Made by a program: the position numbers and the translations under genes. A stretch of 62,624 bases of DNA, counting the filler, from Dimorphilus gyrociliatus (lineage: Eukaryota; Animalia; Annelida), in the NCBI GenBank assembly GCA_904063045.1. It is 4 parts of 4 records of this genome, joined end to end, with 100 filler letters (N's around TTAATTAATTAA, not from the genome) between each part and the next. Parts side by side here need not be neighbours in the genome. Positions count along the whole stretch, not along the records: positions 45,410 to 60,833 come from CAJFCJ010000229.1; 3 more parts are not named here. One strand, written 5' to 3'. Under the pieces are notes generated by a model. It had not been told where the DNA came from. It did not search any database and saw only the letters and a program-made list of their open reading frames with translations. The first letter of the stretch is position 1, and every line of letters begins with the position of its first letter. Positions 45,410-60,833 of the stretch are shown here, piece by piece.

Positions 45410-45619
45410 CATTGCTCATTTAAATATGGATCATGGACTTATAGTGGATATGACATTGGACTCCAGTTTCCCTCTGGCATGGAACAGATAGATTTAAATG
45501 ACTACTATGGTAACTATAGAATTCTTAAAAATACTGGTACATTAAATGTTAAGTTTTATCCTTGTTGTCCTGAGTCATACCCAGATATTACATTCACATT
45601 AGTACTATCCAAAAAGTAA
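45410..45619 (+). CDS. C-terminal 69 aa of a nicotinic-receptor-type ligand-binding domain ending without TM helices (AChBP-like), 5'-truncated
   Basis: HCSFKYGSWTYSGYDIGLQ...KFYPCCPESYPDITFTLVLSKK*: second Cys-loop Cys, loop B Trp, and loop C Tyr-x-Cys-Cys-x3-Tyr. TAA at 45617 and AATAAA at 45678. Confidence 0.8.
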   Translation, partial: HCSFKYGSWTYSGYDIGLQFPSGMEQIDLNDYYGNYRILKNTGTLNVKFYPCCPESYPDITFTLVLSKK

Positions 45620-46440
45620 TCATTGAAACTAATGAAATAATTAAGATTTGGATGAAAAAATCATTTTATCTGCATTCAATAAAATTTGTTACTGTGATGT
45701 TACAGTGATTTTTATTAGTTAAGAAATTGGTAGTAATGTGGACAGGGTTAAAATAAAAAAAAGCAGAGGATTAAAATTGTTACATCTTATGTAATTCTTC
45801 AACCTGAGAAATTCAACTATTATTTAGAAGAGGAAAATATAATGTTTAAAGCATTGCCAGCCACTTGACCTAATGAAATTAAATAGCCTCTCTCCTTCAT
45901 TTGTTTCTAATTTTCTCATGTACCCAATATCATTTTCATACCCAGCTAGAGCAGCATCTTTCAATAAATGAAGTCAACCATTGTAGTAATTTCTCCTGCC
46001 CCCATTGGATAGAATATAAAATTGCAAAAAATGCTGCTGTCACAATTCATCTAACTTCATTATGTTCTTGTTTCTTCTTGCAATTAGAACTCTTTCCACT
46101 TGACAATCAGCATGTTTAGGGGATAACCACTCATCTGCAATCAAACTTATACCAAGCATTTGCAACTTCATCAATGATAATTATTCTAAATATACAGTAA
46201 ATACCTAGGATTGTATTCTTTGGCCCAAGTCTTTTCTTTCTCAAGGGAGACTTTAATATAGATGATTGATCCTATAGTACTATTTGTTGTCATAATAAAT
46301 GATCTGACACTTTCTGCATTAAAGGAAACCACTTCCTGTAAAGTTAATATCCTATTTCCAGTAATATTTTAACTCCTATAGCATGTTAAAGCCACCTTGG
46401 ACTTGGTACCACCTTCCCTCTGATTTCTGGTGTAGACATG

Positions 46441-46949
46441 TTTACAACTTTGGTTATATTTTACATGCTTGAACTCTATTATTTGATGCAACATATACAT
46501 GTACATCTTAAAACCTACGCAAGAAAATGCTATAACATTGGCCAAACATAAGTCTGATTAGTCAGCTTCAAGGCTCATCTTTAATTACCAATAAAGGTTT
46601 GGCCAAGTTATAATTTAATTAACTTGCCTAGGGTGTCGCCAAGTTATAATTCAATTAACCTTCCTAAATGTTCAACCTTGTAACATCCTGTTACTAAACA
46701 TAAATATGTATATGAAAATAATACACATTTCGGCAACTGTAAAGTGATGATTGGATGTCAGAGACAAACCTCAAAGTATATAAATCCTCATTATTCTCAT
46801 TTGGCATGCAGCTTCCATCTGGACCCAAGGACCTGGGAAAATCATCTGGAAACAACCTCCACTGGAACCATCCATCTACTCCTCAACATTGGAAGACAGT
46901 TTGGTAATTTGGCAACCTGCTTTTACAAACTATCTACTCTGCTATCAAA
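46441..46949 (+). repeat. Truncated copy of the gypsy LTR
   Basis: Inverse homolog of about 18415-18917, lacking about 130 bp of the 3' end. Confidence 0.9.
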
Positions 46950-47244
46950 TTGGCAATAAACCCAATGCACATTAGCATTCTGTTTTGTTCTGTTTTCTCA
47001 GTTTTTCCATTTTTGGAATCTAGCAGACTCATAATGTTAAGTCTTTGCATTTCATTCACTAAACAATTTGTTCACAGTATATAGAAGGGTCAAGGTATAG
47101 ACAGTGTTGTCCTGGATGGAAAACTAAGAGATTTTGCTGAATATGGAATTCTGATTTAAATCTGGGAATATCATAAAGAAAATCTATAATTTAAACATAT
47201 AACTTATTTTTCCCATTTGTGTTAATGTGTAATCTAATTGGTGA

Positions 47245-48525
47245 CAGGTGAAACAGTACCTGGGTGAAACTGTACTTGGGTGAAATCATATCCATTGAGG
47301 GTGAAACCCTACTCATTGAGGGTGAAATCGTACCCATAGGTGGTGAATCTCTTGCTGTGACCAAGTAAAACTGTTATTGTTGATTCATATAGAAATGAAA
47401 AAAATATGATTATTTATGTATTGAAGAGGTATTATACTATAAGTTAACTAAAGAAAAGAACAGATAATAAAAACTGTGGAGTATAAATATAAGAAGTCTG
47501 GATTAATAATTCATCAGCTAATATCCTTCCAAGCCTATAATCATCCCAGATTTCAAATATGTTCTTCTGTATATCATCATATTTTTTTCTCTGATATTTG
47601 ATAATCTTCTCAAAGAGAAGTTTTTCATAAATACAAACAAAATCAGCCTCTCTTTTCAATTCATCAATCAACAAATAGAATGATCCTTTTGATTGTACTT
47701 TATTATTCATTCTATTGTGCCATCCTTCCATACTATTATTAGTCCTTATTGATAATCCAAATATTGACCAATTCAATGGTTTCCAAGTAGAATTCAAAAT
47801 CCAAGTATTTTTATAATATGCCAGCAAGTCTGAAAATTTTCTCTTTTCTTCCAGCTGACTCTTCAAGCTAAAAAATGTAGGAGTAATAATATCTGCAGGC
47901 AGAAAAGGTAAAGCCATCAACTTCCTCAGGTCTCTCCAGTCCTCTCCTTTCTCCATATATCTTCCAGAGAAGCCAAGAGACTAAAAAGAGAATTTATTAA
48001 AAGTTGAAAAGTATCATATTTATTAATATCTTGTACCTGAATTTTTCTATAGATTGCCTCGGTGAAGTGGAAAACACAACCATAAATTTCTGATTCTGGA
48101 TAGATCTTAGAGACAGTTTTCCACAAACTCATCTCAAAATCTATTACATACCAAACAGAATTTTCTCTTCTGTCTTCCATAAACTGTAAGTTTGCAATTT
48201 TTGCACTTGATTGCCATATTTCAAAATGTGCAGATTTGAAATGTTTAATTTATTATTTGAAAAGCAGCAGAAAACTTTGAAACAAATATTTAAATACTAT
48301 TTCAAGATTCTCTTATCAAGTAATCAACAAACAAATTCAAAATGGCTGACCTGAAAAACACTGGTACTTGTATATCACATATTTGTTAAAACAAATAAAT
48401 TAATTATTTCATTTTTTGATTTTCTCATGTTGACAGTTAAAATTTCATCCAGGTACGATTTCACCCTCAATGGGTAGGGTTTCACCCTCAATGGATACAG
48501 TTTCACCCAGGTACGGTTTCACCCC
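47245..48525 (-). mobile_element. Internally deleted Phantom-type MULE of a second family
   Basis: Ends are built from GGGTGAAAC.GTAC/CCATTGA units. ORFs contain VIDFE, GCVFHFTEAIYRKIQ|intron and RTNNSMEGWHNR. The PHD, FLYWCH and first-Asp (DGTF) region is missing. Confidence 0.85.
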
Positions 48526-48798
48526 TATTCATCTAATCTTTATGATATATATATGCCCTTTACACTGCATGGAAACTCTAGTCATATTTGAACATCAAAT
48601 TTTATTGCTTTTAAAAATATATACCCTTCAAAGGTTCTATCAAAAAAAGCTATGTCATTGAAAAAGGATAATTTCGAAGCTAGAATTTTAAGTAAGACAA
48701 GGTTTAGGACAGATATTAAAACAATTTTACCAGTTTACATTATTCCTTAGGAATATTAAGGAATAGAAAATTAGAGCAAGAGATTTGTTATGGTACAT

Positions 48799-50316
48799 TC
48801 ACAAAATTGGATATGTACTTTTTTTTTCCATAGTTTTACTTAGATACTTTGATATTTTGAAGGGTTTTAAAATATAATCAACATTAATCAGCCAACATAC
48901 TTCTTTGTTTCTTTCCACTTTTTCCCCCTTTATTAACTTGTTGTCAATGTCAATTGAAATGAACTTTGATTCAATTTTACCATCTGACTGAACTTCTGGA
49001 TAAAATTTGTATCTCTTTTTCCCAATATCACCAATCAGTCCATTCATTTCTTGATAATCTTCAGTTGATAGTTTAAAGCTTACATCCAAATGAATTTCTG
49101 ATGTATAGATTTCTGAATTTGAATTGTTTTTCCATGATGTACTAAAGACATTACAAAGATTTGATTTGTGACAATCAAATATTGAAAATGTTTAGATTTA
49201 AATGTAATGTTTTGCATATTGGCAGTCCAGTTAATTAGTTGTCCATTGTCAAAAATAATATAATTTGTTGAAGTGGTTATTATACCAAAATCAAATGTTA
49301 TAAAAATCTTATGAATGTAGTAATCATCTCTAAGCTGTCCATAAATTTGAATACCACTTGAACTAAAACCACCAATATGTAAATAATCTCCAGGCAAGCC
49401 TATCATAACATATAGATTTTTTTAATAGACTTGAATAGTCCAAAACAACTTGTTTGAAATGGGGATCCCCTGATGCAGAAGGCCATGGATCACTATTAGG
49501 AGCAAAATAAATTGGAATATCAACACTGAATATAAGAGTGTTGTCCAATTTTTCACAACTTAATCCCATCAGTATTGACTTTGTGGAACCAACTTTTGTA
49601 GCTACAACAGTATCATCATCATAACCAGAGAAAGTGTATTCAGATTTATCTAAACTTGCTTTATCAGGATTGGGGATGGAATAACTAAAAAAACACAAAA
49701 TGCCTAAATTAACACTCTTGTTTCACTATATCATGGTATTATTTATGGAAAAAGTGATCATTTTCAAAATAAATAAAAGTCATGCTGACTTGCAATTGAG
49801 TTTATCTTAAGTTTTAACACTTAACATTCTTCATACCATTTTCTGTAAACACTATATATTTAATGTTGAAAGAAATTGAAGACATTTCATCAGCACATGT
49901 GAAACTCTGAGTAATCAATGTCTTTTCTGTTAATATTTCAAAATGCTTAGATGGGACACTGAGACTGTTAAAAGACTCAGCTGTGTTTATAGATCCTCTA
50001 TAAAGCTCAATCCCATCAGGTTTTGTTAGTTTAAATCTGAAAAAAAACATTTAATGAAATATCTGAAACCATTCTAAATTGAAAAATTTGATAATAAATT
50101 CACTAACTCACAAGTAGGGGAGCCTAAATCTTTAATTAGTTTGACATCAGATCCATATTTTTTGATATTTACAATATCAAACTCTACCAAAAATTGATAG
50201 GCACATAAATTAGCTGTAAAAAATGAGCAAAATGTTATTAAAATTATTATTTACAAGCAAGAAAAGAGGCTAAGAAATCCTAATGTAAAAGCAAAACAAT
50301 TTAGTTTGGTCTTCAT
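48799..50316 (-). pseudogene. Secreted protein with an inter-alpha-trypsin-inhibitor heavy-chain C-terminal-like domain, multi-exon, frameshifted
   Basis: Signal-like start MKTKLNCFAFTLGFLSLFSC, then short-intron exons, then SASGDPHFKQVV...SICYD / IGLPGDYLHI..SGIQIYGQL, matching the GDPHF...CF.I.G.PG pattern from memory. Frame breaks near 49410 and 49085. Confidence 0.55.
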
Positions 50317-50840
50317 TTTTTTAATTTTGGATTTTTTTTGTACTGAGACACCAGAATATATATATATATATATATTTGTAAATATAGACAACCTCTTGTT
50401 AAAAAAATACTTCTTTTCAACTAGGTTGGGTCTTTTTTTTAATAAAAGAAAAATCTTTTGAAAAAATTTTAATTAAAACTGTCAGAATGTCATTTGTCAT
50501 GATAATTCAAAACAATACCTCATACACTTTTGGATAGTTTTTTTTCTTGTTTTCTATAACTTAACCATTGGATCTCTTTGCTCCTTTCTTTTTATTCTTA
50601 CTGAGTAGTTTCATTTTCTAATATTTTTATATTAACTCAATATTTAGCATTTGTCAGTTACATGCTTTAATTGTTATATGAAAATTATGCAAGAGAACTC
50701 TCTTATCAATACCTTATTGTAAAAATCTTGAATTATAAATCAAACATTTTGTATTAATAAAACATAGACAGTGCTGACATTATACATGACTACAAAGAAG
50801 TCTTCATGTTGAAGTTTTAAATCAAATCTGATTGGCATAT

Positions 50841-51110
50841 GTACTTGTATTGTAATTGTAGGAATTTGTGCTTCTTCAGAACACTATTAATCCTCTCCAA
50901 TGATTTATCAACTTACCAAAGTACTCACATAAATAGAATCTTTCAAGTTTCTACACAAATAGTCTTAACAAATGTAATTTTGGTAGAGATAATTCAACAA
51001 AACACCAGTATTTCATCAAAAGAATATGTTTCGAGTAAATGAGTTTCTAGTTCTAAACAATTAAGTTTAAACAGTTAATGGTTAAAAAACTGAATTGACA
51101 AGCTGGGGAA
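50841..51110. repeat. Diverged 3' fragment of family A
   Basis: TGTACTTGTATTGTAATTGTAGGAATTT...AAAACTGAA matches the inverse of family A ends. Confidence 0.7.
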
Positions 51111-51218
51111 AAGCATTTCCTTTTATACATTTCCAAAGCTGGGTTCAAGTGGTCAAAGGATTACAAACTTGAAATCTGATGGTCTCCTAATTCTCATGTA
51201 ACAAAAATATGAAAGACT

Positions 51219-51598
51219 TGTTATATCACACATATAAAATATAATGCTAAGATTAGGGCCACATGCCAAACATGTGCCACAGTAAACAGGTCTGCCTCAT
51301 CACCATCTGGTGTTTGATCTGCATCTTTTCCATGTTCTTTGTTCCTTTGTTAATTCCCAAGTAGCCAACATCTGTTACAGTCAAAGAGTCTATTTCTTAA
51401 GAAATAGAGTTCTTTCTAAAGTACTAAAAGCTAACACTATGAAATAAAAGTCTTTCTAAAGTTCCATGACTATAGTTCCTATGAAATGAAAGTATTTCTA
51501 TAGTTGGACCATTGTAATTCCTATAAAATGGAAGTCTTTCTAATGTACCCTTATATCTAAAGTTTAATTATTGATATATCATTATAGCTAAGTGCACA
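51219..51598. repeat. Family B repeat, second copy
   Basis: Inverse homolog of 37252-37630. Confidence 0.7.
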
Positions 51599-52019
51599 AC
51601 TTATGCAATTTGTTCACATTTAATATATTAAAATAACAAACTGTACTAGTTTAAATAAACAAAAGAAGATATTTGATAGATATTTATAAACACTCTATCA
51701 GCCATTTCATAATTGATACCTCCCCTTCTCTTTCTTTGTGCCAATCTGTTAAGTCTCAATTAACTGTGGGTGTCTGTCAGAATAACTTCTTTTAATTGAT
51801 AAGAATAATTATTAATTCATAGAAACTAATGTCCTTTAAAAAAAATTATCAAAAAATTGTTATTCTTTTATAAAATTCAGTTTTAGTAATTAGACTTCAA
51901 AAAAAGGGGTTAGTTGAAAATGAGTCACCATTTATTTAATCCAGCATTAGGGGGCTAAGCTGCATAAATCAAATAGTAAATTATCTTATTATAATTATAT
52001 CTTTAGCTATTCAAACAAA

Positions 52020-53190
52020 ATGGTGGTCATTGATAGAGGAATTTGTCATTTGGTTGTTGCAAAACACCAAGAAGGGCTATCATTGAATAAATTTGCAAAA
52101 ATGTTTAAAAATTTTAGGTTCATTGCTCAAAATATCTGAAAAAAGTTTCAATTGTATCATGCTATTGAAGATTTATCCAGATGTGGCAGACCAGTGAAAT
52201 TAAGTGAGTCAGATGAGAGAATAATATTCCTTATATCAAGTAGATTCTGGGGAGAAAAAAAAATTTTGTCAGCTTCTAAACTAGCATCAGTTATATCACT
52301 ATCAATATGTGAGAATGTTTTAAGGAAACATAACTTGAGAGGCTATGTTCCAGGAAAAAAAACCCCTATTAAAAAAAAGACCCTTGTCAAATAGGAGAAA
52401 ATTTTGTAAAAGACTCCTCTCTTGGAGCACAGATCAAAATAATAGAATTGTGTTTTCAGATGAGACAAAGATAGATTAAAATCCAAAACACAGGCAGTTT
52501 GTCAGAAGGCATCCATCTGATATATATAATGCAAAATATGCAAAAAAACTTTTAAAGAGGCAAATGGTTCCCTAAATATATGGCATTTTATAAAAAGTGA
52601 TGGTAGCAGAGGTATACATTTATATAAAAGTAATTTAAATTTGGAGAAGTATCAAGAAATTCTTGATAAATCTTTTCTAGAGAATTATGATAGGGACCAT
52701 GTTGTCATGCAGGATGGTGCTCCATGCCATACATCTAGGAGTAGCTTAAGGTACCTAAATGAAAAGAACATAAGGCACTTGAAAGACTGGTCAGCCCAGA
52801 GTCCTGACCTAAATCCTATTGAAAATTTATGGTCATACCTAAAAGGAACAGTTGGCAAACATATGTGCAAAAATGTAGATAATCTATGGAGGACAAGACA
52901 GCAAGAATTCAACAATATTGCAATTGAATATGTTAAAAAATTGTTTAATAATTTTATAAAGAGGCTATAGCTGTGTGTTTTCAATAAGGGTGGCCATACC
53001 AAGTATTAAAAAGGTTTAAAAGTATTTTTACTTCATTTTCATAAAATATTATAATAATTCATGTATATCAATTCTAAAACAATGTCCTAAGGTAGATTTA
53101 ATGTAAAATATTTAATTAAATAGTTAATCTGTATAAGTTTACATCTAAACAAATTTTCACAAGGTGGCTGAGGACTTTTTGCCTATACTG
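52020..53190 (+). mobile_element. Tc1-like transposon (DD35E), pseudogenised, only the 3' TIR seen
   Basis: RCGRPVKLS, VFSDETK and MQDGAPCH...DWSAQSPDLNPIENLW (35 residues between D and E). The end reads TA|CAGTATAGGCAAAAAGTCC on the minus strand at 53190. Confidence 0.85.
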
Positions 53191-53551
53191 TATAATCTAT
53201 GGCCTGTCTTTTTCATTTTTAATATTTTCATATCATATTTAATATTCTTTTCCAATATTTTTAACTAAAGCTTTAAATTTGATTTTGTCAGGTAGAATAT
53301 TTTTATTAATTTTGTCTCTTTCTTATTAATTGGATTAATTATTTTTTCAATGGCACCATCTTGGGAATATACTTTTCAAGCTAGTAAAGTAATCAATTTA
53401 GGATCTTCAATGACTACATACCAAATAAATTTATCTTTCTGTAAACTTTTATGCTATGAAAGGCCATTCTGCAAGTAACTGAGCCAACTGCAAAACTGCA
53501 ATGCTATAAAATATCCAAAATTTTATATTTTCAGAGGAATTTCTAAGGCAA

Positions 53552-54480
53552 TGTACACATTTAGGCAGTTCGTAGGTACTAAACACATAAGCTTGTAACC
53601 AGGCTCACAAATTCACACAATACACCCAAATTGTTACATTTCATTCATCAATGGAAAGCAATATTGAAAGAGTATTATAGAGTACTCTACACGCCTAAAA
53701 CTACAACATACACTATTTAAACTAAGTTGTTAACCCTAATTATTATACACATCATATTTAATGAATATTAATTATATCTTCCACTATTCTATTTATATTT
53801 GGAGCTTTTAGATTATTGTCACTTTTGAACAGTATTGTATGCACAATACTATATTGGATGATTAAGTTTAATACTTTTATCCTACCAGTCCTTTACACAG
53901 AAACATATTATCTTACACAAACAATTATTATTAATAATTTGTTGTATATTAAAACGGCATCAAGTTGACCTTTTCCTATTTTTGTGTTTTGGAATCAATC
54001 CAACTTCTATTAATAATTGTTACATCTTAGGCAACTTTCTGACCTACTAAAATAGGGAGCAAAAGTTCTCCAAGATAAAGAAAAAGTAACAAACATGGAA
54101 GTATATTTGAACTTTCCCTTTATCCAAATTGTTACATTTGTTTGTGTGAATATTTTTATCTGTGAACTGTGAACTATTGGAAAAGTATATAAACCCTTTG
54201 AATTTAACAGTAGTCAGTTCAGTTTTCTAACCGTCAGCTAGTTGTTTAAACTAGCTTGTTTAGAACTAGAAGCTCATTTTACTCAATACATATTCTTTGG
54301 ACGAAATACTGGTGTTTTGTTAATCAATTTCTACCGAAATTGCCTTTGTTAGACTATTTGTGGACGAACTTTAAAGGTTCTATTTGTTTGAGTACTTTGG
54401 CAAGTTGGTAAATGATTGGAAAGGACGATTACAGTTGTGACGAACCAGAAATTCCTACAATTACAATACAACAAAGTACA
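53552..54480. mobile_element. Solo-LTR-like family A element with perfect 5-bp TSD
   Basis: GGCAA|TGTACAC...AAGTACA|GGCAA, 929 bp. Confidence 0.85.
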
Positions 54481-55223
54481 GGCAAGTTGCTATTATCAAA
54501 TACAGGCTCAAAATTTTCAATACTACATAATTTATGAAAAATTTGATTTAAAAACTAAAGATAATGAAAAGATTGATGTTTTAAAAATTGGAATTTTACA
54601 AAAACAATACTTATAAATAAAATTTTAGCAATTAAAGGTTAAAGTCGACTTAGTTCTTTTTCTAAAACAGTACTAATGTAACAATTAAACAAAAGTCCTA
54701 TTTAAGTTGTTTTTTCAAAATAAAATGCTTAAGCATATAATTTCATGAAAATTCAATAGTAAGGTAGATAGTTGCCAAGTTAATTAACTAGCATTCAATA
54801 GGGAAGGGAAAAAGTCTTCTTCCAACTTGGGTTCCTATATTTAACATCCAATCATCTCTTTGCATAACTATTAGGTTTCCATAGAAATCTGCTTAAGTTT
54901 TACCACAATCTTAAACTATTTAGACATGAATTTTTCATGCGCCTAAAATTGACCTTAAGTTAAACTTTAATTATAATATTAGTGTATCTTAATGGAATAC
55001 TAGACCTGTTCACTAAAAGGGTTCATTCAGGACTGAATGCCTGCTGCTACCTACGCCCTACTTTTATACAATTCCTTATCAGTTGTTCATGCCTTAGCTG
55101 TCAACAACAAGGGTCTAACCTCAGATAAGGATTGTTCACAACAAACAGGGTCAATGGTTATCATATTATGCAATAGTGATTTAAACAACAATGGCTTTGT
55201 CCATTGTTATATAATATTCATGT

Positions 55224-55862
55224 TGTACTGCTCTTGCTGGCAAAATTTATGCATTTGCAAGTTATAACAGTACTGGTTCTACTTGAACCTTTAAACAAAT
55301 TTTTAAATTAAACTTAAATTATTATTCGCAATAATAATACTTAAGCAAGTAACAATATAAGAGTTTGATAGCAGAGTAGATAGTTCGTAAAAGCAGGTTG
55401 CCAAATTACCAAACTGTCTTCTAATGTTGAGGAGTAGATGGCTGGTTCCAGTGGAGGTTGTTTCCAGATGATTTTTCCAGGGCCTTGGGTCCAGATGGAA
55501 GCTGCATGCCAAATGAGAATAGTGAGGATTTATATACTTTGAGGTTTGCCTCTGACATCCAATCATCACTTTACAGTTGCCGAAATGTGTAGTTCATATT
55601 TATGTTTAGTAAGAGGATGTTACAAGGTTGAACATTTAGGAAGGTTAATTGAATTATAACTTGGCCACACCCTAGGCAAGTTAATTAAATTATAACTTGG
55701 CCAAACCTTTATTGGTAATTAAAGATGAGCCTTCAAGCTGACTAATCAGACTTATGTTTGGCCAATGTTATAGCATTTTCTTGCATAGGTTTTAAGATGT
55801 ACATGTATATGTTGCATCAAATAATAGAGTTCAAGCATGTAAAATATAACCAAAGTTGTACA
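55224..55862 (-). mobile_element. Solo LTR of the gypsy family with 4-bp TSD
   Basis: ATGT|TGTACTG...TTGTACA|ATGT, highly similar to 18283-18917. Confidence 0.93.
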
Positions 55863-56197
55863 ATGTATATAAACACTTGTTGTTGTAAACATGTTTGGTT
55901 ATGCAACATCTTATTCTTTGCCTATAAAAGGGGTTGGCGCCAGTCTAGGCTTTTTCAATTTGGACAATAGAGTTGTAGATGTAGAAGGTGAGAATATAGA
56001 TCCTAACAGATGGTGTTTTATTACTTTTAAAACATATGTGACCTCAAATATCTAAAGAATTGTATGGTGTAAATGTAAAATATTTGTCTTATCTTTTCAA
56101 TGCAAAAAGTGTATTAGAGAAAGAAAAAATATAGTAGAAAGTTAACTTTTACCAAAATGTAAATCAAATATTCAAATTCAATTTCCTTGTTAATACT

Positions 56198-57003
56198 TTA
56201 GCAAGTATTTTGTGAGATAATTGTGGCAATCCAATCAAAGTAGTATAAGGCTTGCGAATAAAGTGATAATTTATTATTACAAGGCTCTAAAATTTTGGAA
56301 ACAACTCCTGGAACTATCCATCTATTACCAATTTTACAAGATAGTGGACTACCTCCATCACCCTGTCAGTTATTTTGTTAATTAAAAACCGGTAATAAAA
56401 AAAGAACAAGATTGATTTCTATTTTACTTACAAAACAAACTTGTTTCAAATTATCATTCCACAGACAAATCATTTGTGGATATGTTAGATTAATGTTTTG
56501 ATTCATTGTCTTTAAAGCTGCTGAACAAAATGTTTCATTTTTTAAATAAAGTTGAGCTTTTTGCAATGATTGACTTGCAAGTTTAGGAGCTGAAAATGAA
56601 AAATTAAAGATAATAGAAATCAAATATAACTCAAAATAATTTAAAAATATTAACAATTTGGATTATTTGAACCAAAACCAGTTGCAATGCAAGTGTAATT
56701 TTCATTTCCATTTAGTGGATGCCTCCTTAAACAGGCTATATTTATGTAATTTGAAAGTGTAACCTTTCTGTCCAATTTTACCAGCACAATACCAAATTTA
56801 TATTTATTATTGTTGCTTGAATGGACAAAAACCGATTTTGAAGTGTATTTATTACCTTGGAGAAGCCTGTTTGATCCTAAGTATACTGTGAATGGACTCT
56901 CCCTTAAAAAGAAGACAAATATTTAGAAAATATCAATTTTTTACAACTCAACTAGGCCTGCTATAAAAAGTAGACCCAAATCTTCAATTATATATATATC
57001 TTC

Positions 57004-57044
<41 letters not shown>

Positions 57045-60000
57045 CTTTGGATTAATACAATCAGCATTGGTTAGAACAAATCTTTCATGGATCAATGTTC
57101 CACCACAAAGCCAAACATGACCTTGTCTCTTGAATGCAACTGTTGCCTATTCAATTGTTTTTTTCAAATTTACATTTTATTTGGGATTAGCAAATGAAAA
57201 TATGAATATTTATTACCTGCCATGGAAAATCTTCAATATTTGTAGGTTGTCCACCAACAATAAATGGTGTACTAGAAGTTAAACCACATCTTGGTGGGTT
57301 TAATCCAATTCTATTTAGATCTAAAAGAATGCATTGTTTTCTATGTTGTATTTTAAAAAAGAAAATTTTTCCTAACCATTATCTGAGTAACAAGCACTAT
57401 TTTTCAAAAATATTGCACTAATTGATATTGCTGAGACCTGTTGATTTTTGGAGACTTGTGCAATAATTTGAAATTGTTCAACATTACTCTTTAAAGTTCT
57501 TAGATAAGTAGAGTTAATATTTTGACTGCAACTTCCTTTTTGTGAGAACATAAGTTCTTCTGAGAATCTGCAAAAAGAAGCCAAAACCAAAAATATGTTT
57601 GAATATTTTTTAATGTGAAAATGAATGTTTCTTTTTCTTACCTAAATGATTTCATACCCTTTTCCCTATAATATATAAATATTTTAGGTAAAACTCCATT
57701 TGTTTGACCAGGAACTACTAATTTTTTCACTCTAAAAGAGAGACATCTATCAGCAGATGAAGAAGTAAATATGGGAGAAGTAAATGTTGCAAATGAATCA
57801 TTCTTTACAGTGATACCACCAATTTGCAGACCGTAATCTATGGAGAAAATGATTTAAAAAATGACATGGAATAATTCAGTTTAAAGTTAGACAAAAAAAA
57901 CCAAAAAAGCAAACCTAAATTATCAGCTCCCAATGGTCTTCTTGTCCAATAAAATTGATCATTACGCAATAAATTCAATTGATAGCCACATAAATGTGTG
58001 TTAAAATTACAATTAACATTTTCACCTATGTTTTTGTAGAAAGTACAACATGTTTATGTTCAAAAGTTTTACAGTATAAAGCACATACTTTTCTTGGGCA
58101 CTGGATAAATAATTGGATTCAAGCCTGAACATTTTCCACTACTGATTTGGAAATAATCTAGAGCAATATGATTTTTTTGTGAGTATCCTTGAATTGCTTG
58201 AAAGAATAGCTATAAATAGAATTATATATATATATATATATATATTAATAAATGTCTCAGTAATGAAGAAAAAAATAAAACCTCGTAAAATGTCGAAGAT
58301 ATTTGAATTTCCTGTTTCTGCCAAGTACCATTTGTTGCTTTCAATGTACTGAGAGAAAATAATGGACCATTTTCTGTATCCCTTAATTGAATATTCAAAT
58401 TTGCTCCACCTAGTCCATTGAAACTTATAATATTATAATAGAATGAAAAACAACCAGTCCCAGTCAATTTTTGCAATCCTGTTGATAAGGTGGCAATATT
58501 GCTTGAATGGGAGTTTGAAGATGAGATTCTTAAACAATATTCTAAAAAATAAATACATTTTATAGTATAAACTGGTATTTTTGATAAAACAATTTAACTG
58601 ACTTCCATTGTAAGGTGAAATTGATTCAAAAGACAAACTACTTCTAATAAATTGCCAATTGGAATTTTGCCAAAATACTTTAAAATCACATAAATCATTC
58701 TGGAAGGTACATAGCATTTTTGTTTTTTTAATACTAGGACAATTTCCTTCTCTAATGATTAAGTCATCTAAAGCTATATCACCTTTTTCATCCCCACCAG
58801 ATGTTGCTTTAATAATAAGTTGGTCAACATTCTCACTAGATTTAAGAGGAATATAGAGTTTATTCCATTGATTTCCAATATTATGATTCTTTTTTAAAAT
58901 ATTTTTTTCCAACATGCCTCTATAGGCAGAAAAAATTTCAAATTCTCCAATCCTATCCTCAGACCCATACATATGATAAGAAGTTTCTAGGCAATAATTC
59001 CTATCTCCAAGGTCAAAGATAGGAGATTTCAATTCAGTTGAAGAGCCTTGTTTGCTATTATTAGCTTCGACATAAATATAATAGCCCATACCATTAGAAG
59101 AATCTATATTTGTTGGAGTAGGACCACAATGTCTTTTCCATTCATAGTCACTTTTTGGACAGTCAAAATGCTTAGAAACACTCCAAGAGCAGAAACTAGT
59201 TTCAAAATTACAGCTCAATTGTCCAGGATTCATTGGAAGAGGTGGAATATTTGAGCAAAGCCCAGGTGTCAAAGATATGTCATCAATTGCTATATCACCT
59301 CTATAATCGCCAGCTGATGTTGCTCTAATTGTAATCTAGAAAAAAAAACCATTAATTTACAATATTCACTGAATGAGTGAAAAAACAACAAACCTTATGA
59401 ATATTTTTCAAAGATGAATTCAAATTTATTGACAAATCATTCCACTTATCTCCAAGACTGTGTGAATGTTTAAATAGTCTGGTTCCAACTCCTCTATAAT
59501 AGCCAAAAATTTCAATTTTACCAGTCAAATTTAATTTACCCAAAATATGATAAAATAGTCTAAAACAGTAAATTTCATTTTTCAATTGGAAATATGGTGA
59601 TATTAATTCAGCAAAATGACCTTTACGAATGGCATTACCAAGGGTATGATCAACTCTAGGTCCAGTATAAGTTGATTGCATACTTCCACTATGCAATCTC
59701 CAAGTATAGTAGTTAAAATCAGAAATAGGATATTTGAAGCTTTTCCAAGAGCAGAAGTTTACTTCAAAATTACAATTTAAAGTTTCTATTGCAAGAAAAA
59801 AGAACTGATAAATTAGTTACAAATATAAAAGAAAAAGTTGTACAGTATTTACCAGGAGTATGGTAAACTGGTATATCAGTTGGTTCCAAATCATCATAAT
59901 TTCCTATAGAAGAAAAAAAGAACATTATCTAGATGTAATGTAAAATTATTTTTTTATTTACAAATCATTTACCTTTACAATCATTTATTTCAAAATTATC

Positions 60001-60709
60001 AACTGCAACTGCTGTGTCTGCCAACTTTGACCTTTGAACTTTTCTAACAAACTGTTATAAGGTAAGACAATATATAATACAATTTTTGGTGTTGTTTTCT
60101 TTTTTACATACACTATCATATGGAATTGTAGTATTTATAGTAGATTTTATCCATTGCCTTTGTGGATTATACTTTCCATTGAATACTGTCTCAAAAACTG
60201 GTAGACCATTATTCAATAAAATTATTGATAAATTGGCATTGATATTGCCAATCATCTGATGGAATTGTAAACAAGTTCTAATTGGCTTAATTTTCTCATA
60301 ATGAATACTATGAATGTTTGGAGATATTAGAAAAGTTTCCAAAAAATTTGAATCCTTGTTAGCGATTGCCATGACAATATCTATAAAATAGAATAGATTT
60401 TTTTAAAGAAACAAACTCATGCATATAAACATACGAACCATTTTGCCCATCATTGTTGGGGAAATTTTGAACTCCTCTTTTAAATTTAAACAATTAAGTT
60501 CCATTAGGAACATTTGATGTGAAATCACAATCATTCAAATGGAAATGGCATCTCCAATAGATTTCTTGGCCTATTTTTTTAAAAAAAAGTAAAAATAGTA
60601 CTCTATTTGAAAAATATGTAAAATATCAACAATTAAAAAAAATACCAAAATTTCTGTAGAATTGATGAAAGAGTATAAATATACTAAAAAAACAGATAAG
60701 CATGTTCAT
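56198..60709 (-). CDS. Secreted multi-MAM-domain protein with a C-terminal catalytically dead trypsin-like domain; at least one in-frame stop
   Basis: Signal MNMLICFFSIFILFHQFYRNFG, about five C.F....C.(W/F/Y)...IA.D MAM repeats, then RCGLTSSTPF-IVGGQPTNIEDFPWQ, LCGGTLIHERFVLTNADC, FGIVLVKL, GDGGSPLSC and YFDWI, with stop at 56198-56200. In-frame TAA at 60494-60496 and possible frame problems near 58490 and 57700. Confidence 0.85.
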
Positions 60710-60833
60710 GATATCTATATTTTGCAATGAAATTTCCTAAGTTACAACTTCTTATATATACATCTAGTGATGTTGGATAAATATAGACATACACTCAATG
60801 TCACCTGACCTACTTATAACTTATTGTTTACAG

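Follow-up and report, generated by a model that had tools for sequence, protein, structure and literature searches.

A reading frame that closes exactly where nicotinic acetylcholine receptors (nAChRs) enter their first transmembrane helix (TM1) can be read in two ways: as the end of a soluble protein consisting of a ligand-binding domain (LBD) only, or as a receptor exon followed into its intron. Such a frame lies at the edge of a contig from the miniature annelid Dimorphilus gyrociliatus, and here we ask which of the two it represents. Acetylcholine-binding proteins (AChBPs) are the main structural stand-ins for the ligand sites of nicotinic receptors, and they buffer acetylcholine at molluscan synapses. 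Principal-face aromatics together with a Cys pair form the typical pattern of cholinergic sites in nAChRs and AChBPs. AChBPs are known from gastropods and one annelid, Capitella teleta, and related proteins termed ACCBPs occur in bivalves and abalone (PMC3423370); a spider AChBP has been reported as well. In the 73.8-Mb genome of D. gyrociliatus, the median intron measures 66 bp and transposons are concentrated in islands devoid of genes (PMC7854359). We put a probability of about 80% on the fragment being a genuine last exon, belonging to an LBD-only, AChBP-like gene that would be the fifth family member in D. gyrociliatus.

A probable terminal LBD exon and its paralogues

The contig piece occupies positions 45410-60833 of the window (the whole stretch of 62,624 nucleotides that was analysed). 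It holds 15,424 bases without a single N at 29.5% G+C, and its left edge falls inside an exon. Translation of 45410-45619 in frame 1 yields 69 codons, HCSFKYGSWTYSG...KFYPCCPESYPDITFTLVLSKK, followed by a TAA (Table 1); the full 69-codon product reads HCSFKYGSWTYSGYDIGLQFPSGMEQIDLNDYYGNYRILKNTGTLNVKFYPCCPESYPDITFTLVLSKK. The exon contributes the C-terminal third of a Cys-loop-receptor LBD, from the Cys that closes the Cys-loop through the final beta-strand. It is matched by positions 139-214 of the 216 in the profile Neur_chan_LBD (Pfam PF02931), with E 3.6e-9 and a score of 36.8 bits, above the curated cut-off of 26. We aligned the fragment with four paralogues, one Capitella LBD-only protein and two receptors (alignment A1), in which the loop C residues Y50, C52, C53 and Y57 are invariant. 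In comparisons with the PDB, the best natural match is the Aplysia AChBP with 52 bits; the alignment takes in loops B and F and the YSCCPEPY of that protein, loop C of the fragment falling on its YxCCxEPY. Alpha2 and alpha7 receptors score 47-52 bits, and since binding-protein and receptor structures are thus matched about equally, the fragment alone cannot separate the two classes.

Table 1. Features of the contig piece (positions count along the window) and the annotated paralogues of the fragment.
Feature	Position	Strand	Length	Coding end	Basis or remark
Terminal-exon coding part, cut by contig edge	45410..45616	+	69 codons	TCC AAA AAG TAA	translation; Pfam; 61-63% identity to DgyrCDS14710 and DgyrCDS14871
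Loop B GSWTY with ligand-contacting Trp	45428..45442	+			S, W, T and Y invariant in alignment A1
Loop C YPCCPESY, vicinal Cys pair and two flanking Tyr (alpha-type principal face)	45557..45580	+			alignment A1
Stop TAA	45617..45619	+			codon position shared with the three paralogues compared at the DNA level
Probable short 3' UTR with AATAAA at 45678-45683	45620..45700	+			signal 58 nt after stop
Very high-copy repeat	46412-47079	+	~650 bp
Inverted copy of this repeat	~55220-55970
MULE-type transposase remnant	47444-48180	-			weak Pfam match; disrupted, in several separate frames
Three overlapping or adjacent open frames	48799-49698	-	96-111 codons		SGDPHF motif; no Pfam family
Tc1/mariner DDE_3 transposase remnant	52140-52967	+			E 5e-11; disrupted, in several separate frames
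Gene with at least two MAM domains	58433-59696, perhaps to 60372	-			E 8e-27 and 3e-7; oriented towards the LBD gene
DgyrCDS14710 (CAD51...)			218 aa	TCA AAA AGT TAA	63% identity to fragment
DgyrCDS14871			217 aa	TCA AAA CGT TAA	61% identity to fragment
DgyrCDS14572 (CAD5126443.1)			217 aa	TTG AAG GAT TAA	52% identity to fragment
DgyrCDS7794 (CAD5119156.1)			212 aa		40% identity to fragment

Upstream of the contig edge, and hence off the contig, lie the 5' two-thirds of the gene, among them most of the Cys-loop, the region of loops A and D and any signal peptide. Just the last two residues of the Cys-loop (HC) are on the contig, and the same pair ends the loop in three paralogues. Because the last exon of the paralogues has 81 codons, about 12 codons of the fragment's exon are missing along with all upstream exons. 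The end of the exon, the stop and about 200 nt downstream agree in run contigs from two separate studies (no other letters in runs X2 and X3, one in run X1), which shows that the stop is not an assembly error.

The annotation of D. gyrociliatus contains four unnamed proteins of 212-218 aa that have a signal-like N-terminus and lack a transmembrane (TM) part (Table 1). The best annotated library match of the fragment, a 217-aa protein, is one of them; a word search started from it brought in two others, and the remaining one was also among the library matches. Each opens with a Met followed by a hydrophobic stretch resembling a signal peptide (e.g., MRVLLLSIFISMLLLQVCY). Each also carries the loop A Tyr and loop D Trp (WSPDIFLYN, FNVWQRM), the Trp of loop B and, in loop C, the pattern Tyr-x-Cys-Cys-x-x-x-Tyr. 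Loop F and complementary-face residues vary from one paralogue to another. Their Cys-loops are at least three residues shorter than those of the two aligned receptors and contain no FPFD motif: 10 residues lie between the Cys in three paralogues (e.g., C-PLDKKRGEYH-C) as opposed to 13 with FPFD in the two receptors. Such a short, hydrophilic Cys-loop fits a protein that has no channel to couple to.

Over its 69 codons, the fragment aligns without gaps to the last 69 codons of DgyrCDS14710, DgyrCDS14871 and DgyrCDS14572, and the fragment and all four paralogues terminate at one column of alignment A1. With the four paralogues it shares the genome, the loop B and loop C motifs and the end column, but the stretch around the Cys pair reads FYPCCPE in the fragment, HYACCEE in DgyrCDS14710 and QYACCEE in DgyrCDS14871. 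Synonymous divergence (dS) exceeds 1 between the fragment and each of the three compared paralogues; across all copies sharing the stop codon it is roughly at least 0.8, except for the recent pair DgyrCDS14710/14871 (dS 0.17). Against these two proteins the fragment gives a dN/dS of about 0.26, a rough figure given 69 codons and a dS near saturation. Exact look-up of the 69-aa and 46-aa products among recorded proteins returned no entry, a word search with the fragment over proteins of 38-120 aa, a range too short for the complete paralogues, yielded no candidate, and a literature search found no paper describing the Dimorphilus LBD-only family. Judged by its sequence, the fragment is a distinct paralogue, the fifth member of a family that is public in the annotation but unnamed.

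The stop codon and the search for transmembrane exons

Counted from the first Cys of the pair, the stop follows residue 18, which in full-length relatives is the final position before TM1 (CC...RIRRK, then VAFYSF...). The TAA is at the same time part of the GTAA of a possible donor, AAA/GTAATC, whose GT lies at 45616-45617 in phase 2. Because of this overlap the stop is ambiguous on its own, as an internal receptor exon whose frame runs on into the intron might look no different, and the question was therefore settled through the downstream sequence and the relatives. At the DNA level, the position of the TAA codon was checked in three paralogues (DgyrCDS14710, 14871 and 14572). It is the same in all of them, and the donor is not kept beside their stops, two genes reading GTTAAA and one having no GT. 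The first four AG acceptors past the candidate donor lead to stops after 1-4 codons, and no acceptor within the piece was found to open a TM1-like frame.

The hexamer AATAAA occurs about 2.0 times per kb on the plus strand of this AT-rich piece, which makes the copy at 45678 weak evidence; by chance, one is expected in roughly one sixth of such 90-nt stretches. The paralogues likewise have an AATAAA about 60-120 nt or less past their stops. These results bear out much of the preliminary description, which had reported intact loops B (GSWTY) and C (YPCCPESY), a missing 5' part, a frame ending where receptors enter TM1, an AATAAA 58 nt past the stop and immediate stops from the nearest acceptors after AA/GTAATC. 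Both loops are confirmed by translation and by the invariant columns of alignment A1, the contig edge does cut the exon, the frame end is a genuine stop in a family-wide column, and the acceptors behave as described; the polyadenylation signal is present as well, although its frequency in the piece reduces its weight.

Past the fragment's exon, 15.2 kb of sequence are available. A tblastn search with 150 relatives (word size 2, E up to 10) gave no plausible plus-strand TM match in the piece. We additionally built a profile from the TM1-TM3 regions of 28 receptors and ran it unfiltered on every open segment of no fewer than 12 codons, 825 in total over the two strands of the 15.4-kb piece, where the best match reached E 0.72. 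On the three paralogue loci nothing better than E 0.37 was obtained, and the weak matches there sit upstream of or inside the genes, with none in the 6-10 kb downstream. A metagenome scan supplied four receptor-like loci from other organisms, used as positive controls only; the profile matched split TM exons in the receptor loci L003-L005 at E 9e-11 to 7e-24. Since the profile detects these controls, TM exons would have been seen in the piece. In the Owenia receptor P0013 and in loci L004 and L005, the end of the domain and TM1 share one exon, from which it follows that these relatives have no ancestral intron there. On these grounds we rejected the idea of an intron site conserved among receptor genes at the position of the stop. 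Weak minus-strand tblastn matches of LBD queries at 48997-49188 (E 0.004-0.5) were likewise set aside as chance, Pfam finding nothing there.

The same-codon stop in three paralogues, the lack of downstream TM exons and the short introns of this genome (about 50-70 bp in the paralogues themselves) together point to an LBD-only product rather than a receptor subunit, and the LBD-only, AChBP-like protein proposed in the preliminary description is supported by this combination. The four TM helices (PF02932) that follow the LBD in a full-length nAChR do not follow it in the fragment; as in AChBPs, the frame ends after the last LBD strand and carries an alpha-type principal face in GSWTY and YPCCPESY. 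The gene would accordingly be read as stopping at the TAA at 45617-45619 and as encoding no channel part. By analogy, we infer secretion, pentamer formation and ligand binding for the product: it would be secreted (a signal peptide is seen in the paralogues only), fold as a beta-sandwich like the extracellular domain of nicotinic receptors and assemble into a soluble pentameric ring, at whose subunit interfaces acetylcholine or a related amine may be bound by the loop B Trp and the Tyr-x-Cys-Cys-x-x-x-Tyr of loop C.

Three other explanations were weighed against this reading. If the fragment were an internal exon of an ordinary nAChR subunit, spliced at 45615/45616 to TM1-TM4 exons beyond the 15.2 kb, a TAA within a donor-like GTAA and a frame ending at the domain/TM1 boundary would both be accounted for; the library proteins P0023 and P0040, which stop equally far from the Cys pair with RIRRR and RIRRM, also resemble receptors cut at this boundary. 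We nevertheless consider such a splice highly improbable. Neither strand of the 15.4 kb contains a TM exon detectable with a profile that works on control loci, the median intron of D. gyrociliatus is just 66 bp, and a convergent MAM-domain gene fills at least 58.4-59.7 kb. Three paralogues moreover have the same-codon TAA with no conserved donor and no downstream TM exons, and the examined receptor relatives (P0013, L004 and L005) are without an intron at the boundary. A dead or partial pseudogene copy of the LBD-only family, unexpressed or broken upstream in a transposon-rich, gene-poor island, is also unlikely, if conceivable. The contig edge lies inside the exon, and with the 5' two-thirds off the contig the gene may be incomplete or broken; downstream follow a very high-copy repeat and MULE and Tc1/mariner remnants, a setting in which dead copies are common. 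A search for sequencing runs matching the stretch returned DNA contigs and no RNA run, and no annotated protein of the fragment's exact sequence is on record. Yet all 69 of 69 codons are open, every family-invariant residue is kept, and the dN/dS against the nearest paralogues is about 0.26 at a dS above 1. The stop occupies the position usual for the family, runs from two studies give an identical sequence, and three paralogue loci, also on small repeat-bearing contigs, are annotated as genes all the same.

The third alternative concerns function only and overlaps the LBD-only reading: the product could be a secreted LBD-only protein that does not buffer acetylcholine and might instead bind another small amine, or have an extracellular matrix, mineral or immune role, as in the ACCBP relatives of molluscs. 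Spiralian LBD-only proteins are indeed many and diverse (25 of the 150 best library matches in the first screen), bivalve and abalone ACCBPs have other roles (PMC3423370), and the variation of loop F and the complementary face among the paralogues is in line with such a change. Against it, the fragment retains the loop B Trp, both loop C Tyr and the Cys pair, and the paralogues additionally the loop A Tyr and loop D Trp. We regard a non-cholinergic role as possible but rather doubtful.

Relationship to known soluble ligand-binding proteins

To place the family, we used a tree of 30 LBD-only and 24 TM-bearing rows, from which the crystallised AChBPs were left out. The four annotated Dimorphilus proteins form one clade (SH-aLRT 99). 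A quick free tree leaves the short fragment unplaced; the tree constrained to the Dimorphilus clade is better by 45 log-likelihood units, with a p-AU of 0.99. This clade falls in a mostly LBD-only group with two Capitella proteins, a grouping that is weakly to moderately supported (SH-aLRT 85). The LBD-only state changes 4 times on the tree as compared with about 18 times when labels are shuffled, which suggests that LBD-only proteins make up a few old groups and not many recent truncations. Complete LBD-only proteins accounted for 25 of the 150 best library matches in the first screen, coming from Capitella, Mytilus, Nucella and unnamed transcripts, and 10 of these 25 end, like the fragment, at the 18th residue from the first Cys of the pair. 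Among them, P0047 and P0096, filed in EukProt under the apicomplexan Siedleckia nematoides, are complete LBD-only transcripts that probably derive from the polychaete host.

One claim of the preliminary description is to be revised here. It had assigned the protein to an additional small-intron animal lineage; this fails, as D. gyrociliatus is an annelid and an AChBP is known from the annelid Capitella teleta (PMC3423370). The independent origin that it had raised as a possibility is conceivable.

The C. teleta AChBP (PDB 4AFG; McCormack et al. 2010, cited in PMC3423370) is like the Dimorphilus proteins an annelid, soluble LBD homologue that has a vicinal Cys pair and ends shortly past loop C. 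It is nevertheless distant, scoring 36.5 bits to the fragment and 89.8 bits to DgyrCDS14710, below vertebrate alpha4 and alpha7. For DgyrCDS14710, the PDB scores of vertebrate alpha4, alpha2 and alpha7 (110-115 bits) exceed those of the natural Aplysia and Capitella AChBPs (about 90 bits). Beside the crystallised AChBP, Capitella has at least two more LBD-only proteins, ELU06282 (P0098) and ELU13770 (P0030); both are distinct from the crystallised protein and lie nearer to the Dimorphilus clade in the tree. The molluscan AChBPs of Aplysia californica, Lymnaea stagnalis, Bulinus and Biomphalaria resemble the family in consisting of a signal peptide and an LBD without a channel, but they belong to a different phylum. 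The Dimorphilus paralogues end at the 18th residue from the first Cys; the Aplysia and Lymnaea AChBPs extend several residues past this end point. Alpha-type nAChR subunits (vertebrate alpha7, alpha4 and alpha2; Owenia CAH1792626; Babylonia XP_076462252) belong to the same domain family and have the same alpha-type loop C, but possess TM1-TM4 and a 13-residue FPFD Cys-loop, neither of which is found in the Dimorphilus family.

Taken tentatively, the Dimorphilus clade, the extra Capitella proteins and many spiralian transcripts could represent an old soluble LBD branch separate from the crystallised molluscan and Capitella AChBPs, although we would not put the chances of this high. Such a branch would have arisen from an alpha-type subunit truncated exactly at the domain/TM1 boundary and, if real, could differ from known AChBPs in the ligands it prefers. 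With five members in a miniature worm whose genome spans 74 Mb, the Dimorphilus family indicates that soluble receptor-domain proteins persist despite genome compaction, and that annelids have more of them than one would expect from Capitella alone. The differences in loops C and F among its members could supply new binding-site variants for structural work. For annotation, the locus illustrates that a stop at the domain/TM1 boundary can overlap a donor-like GTAA, and that paralogues and downstream exons should be checked before a truncation is called.

Surroundings of the exon

Transposons gathered in gene-free islands, as reported for this genome (PMC7854359), fit the look of the piece. The ~650 bp repeat is present in very high copy number (summed word depth of ~230,000, compared with ~220 for single-copy sequence, in run X1), and its two inverted copies flank about 8 kb with transposon remnants (Table 1). 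Three D. gyrociliatus contigs have repeats in common with the piece at 87-98% identity. One of them is the DgyrCDS paralogue locus L001, which encodes a 217-aa protein and shares repeats of 650 bp and 507 bp with the piece at 96% identity.

At the other end of the piece, the open frames of the MAM-domain gene are separated by a gap of about 80 nt, which fits the short introns of D. gyrociliatus. A word search of proteins with the MAM open frame returned nothing at E 1e-10 or better, and an ESM Atlas search matched the generic MAM family only.

The left edge of the piece recurs in independent data: a contig of run X2 starts exactly at 45410, like the piece itself. Other run contigs switch at 45500 and at 45539, with overhangs that match the DgyrCDS14710 gene letter for letter. 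Together with the shared repeats, these overhangs place the piece in D. gyrociliatus or in something indistinguishable from it. Sequence common to the paralogues probably broke the assembly inside the fragment's exon. A 1017-nt contig of run X2 also spans the three open frames with the SGDPHF motif at 100% identity. Over 45410-50400, C>T (27) and G>A (11) differences are strongly over-represented in run X6, a pattern resembling that of a bisulfite-type library with the same species label.
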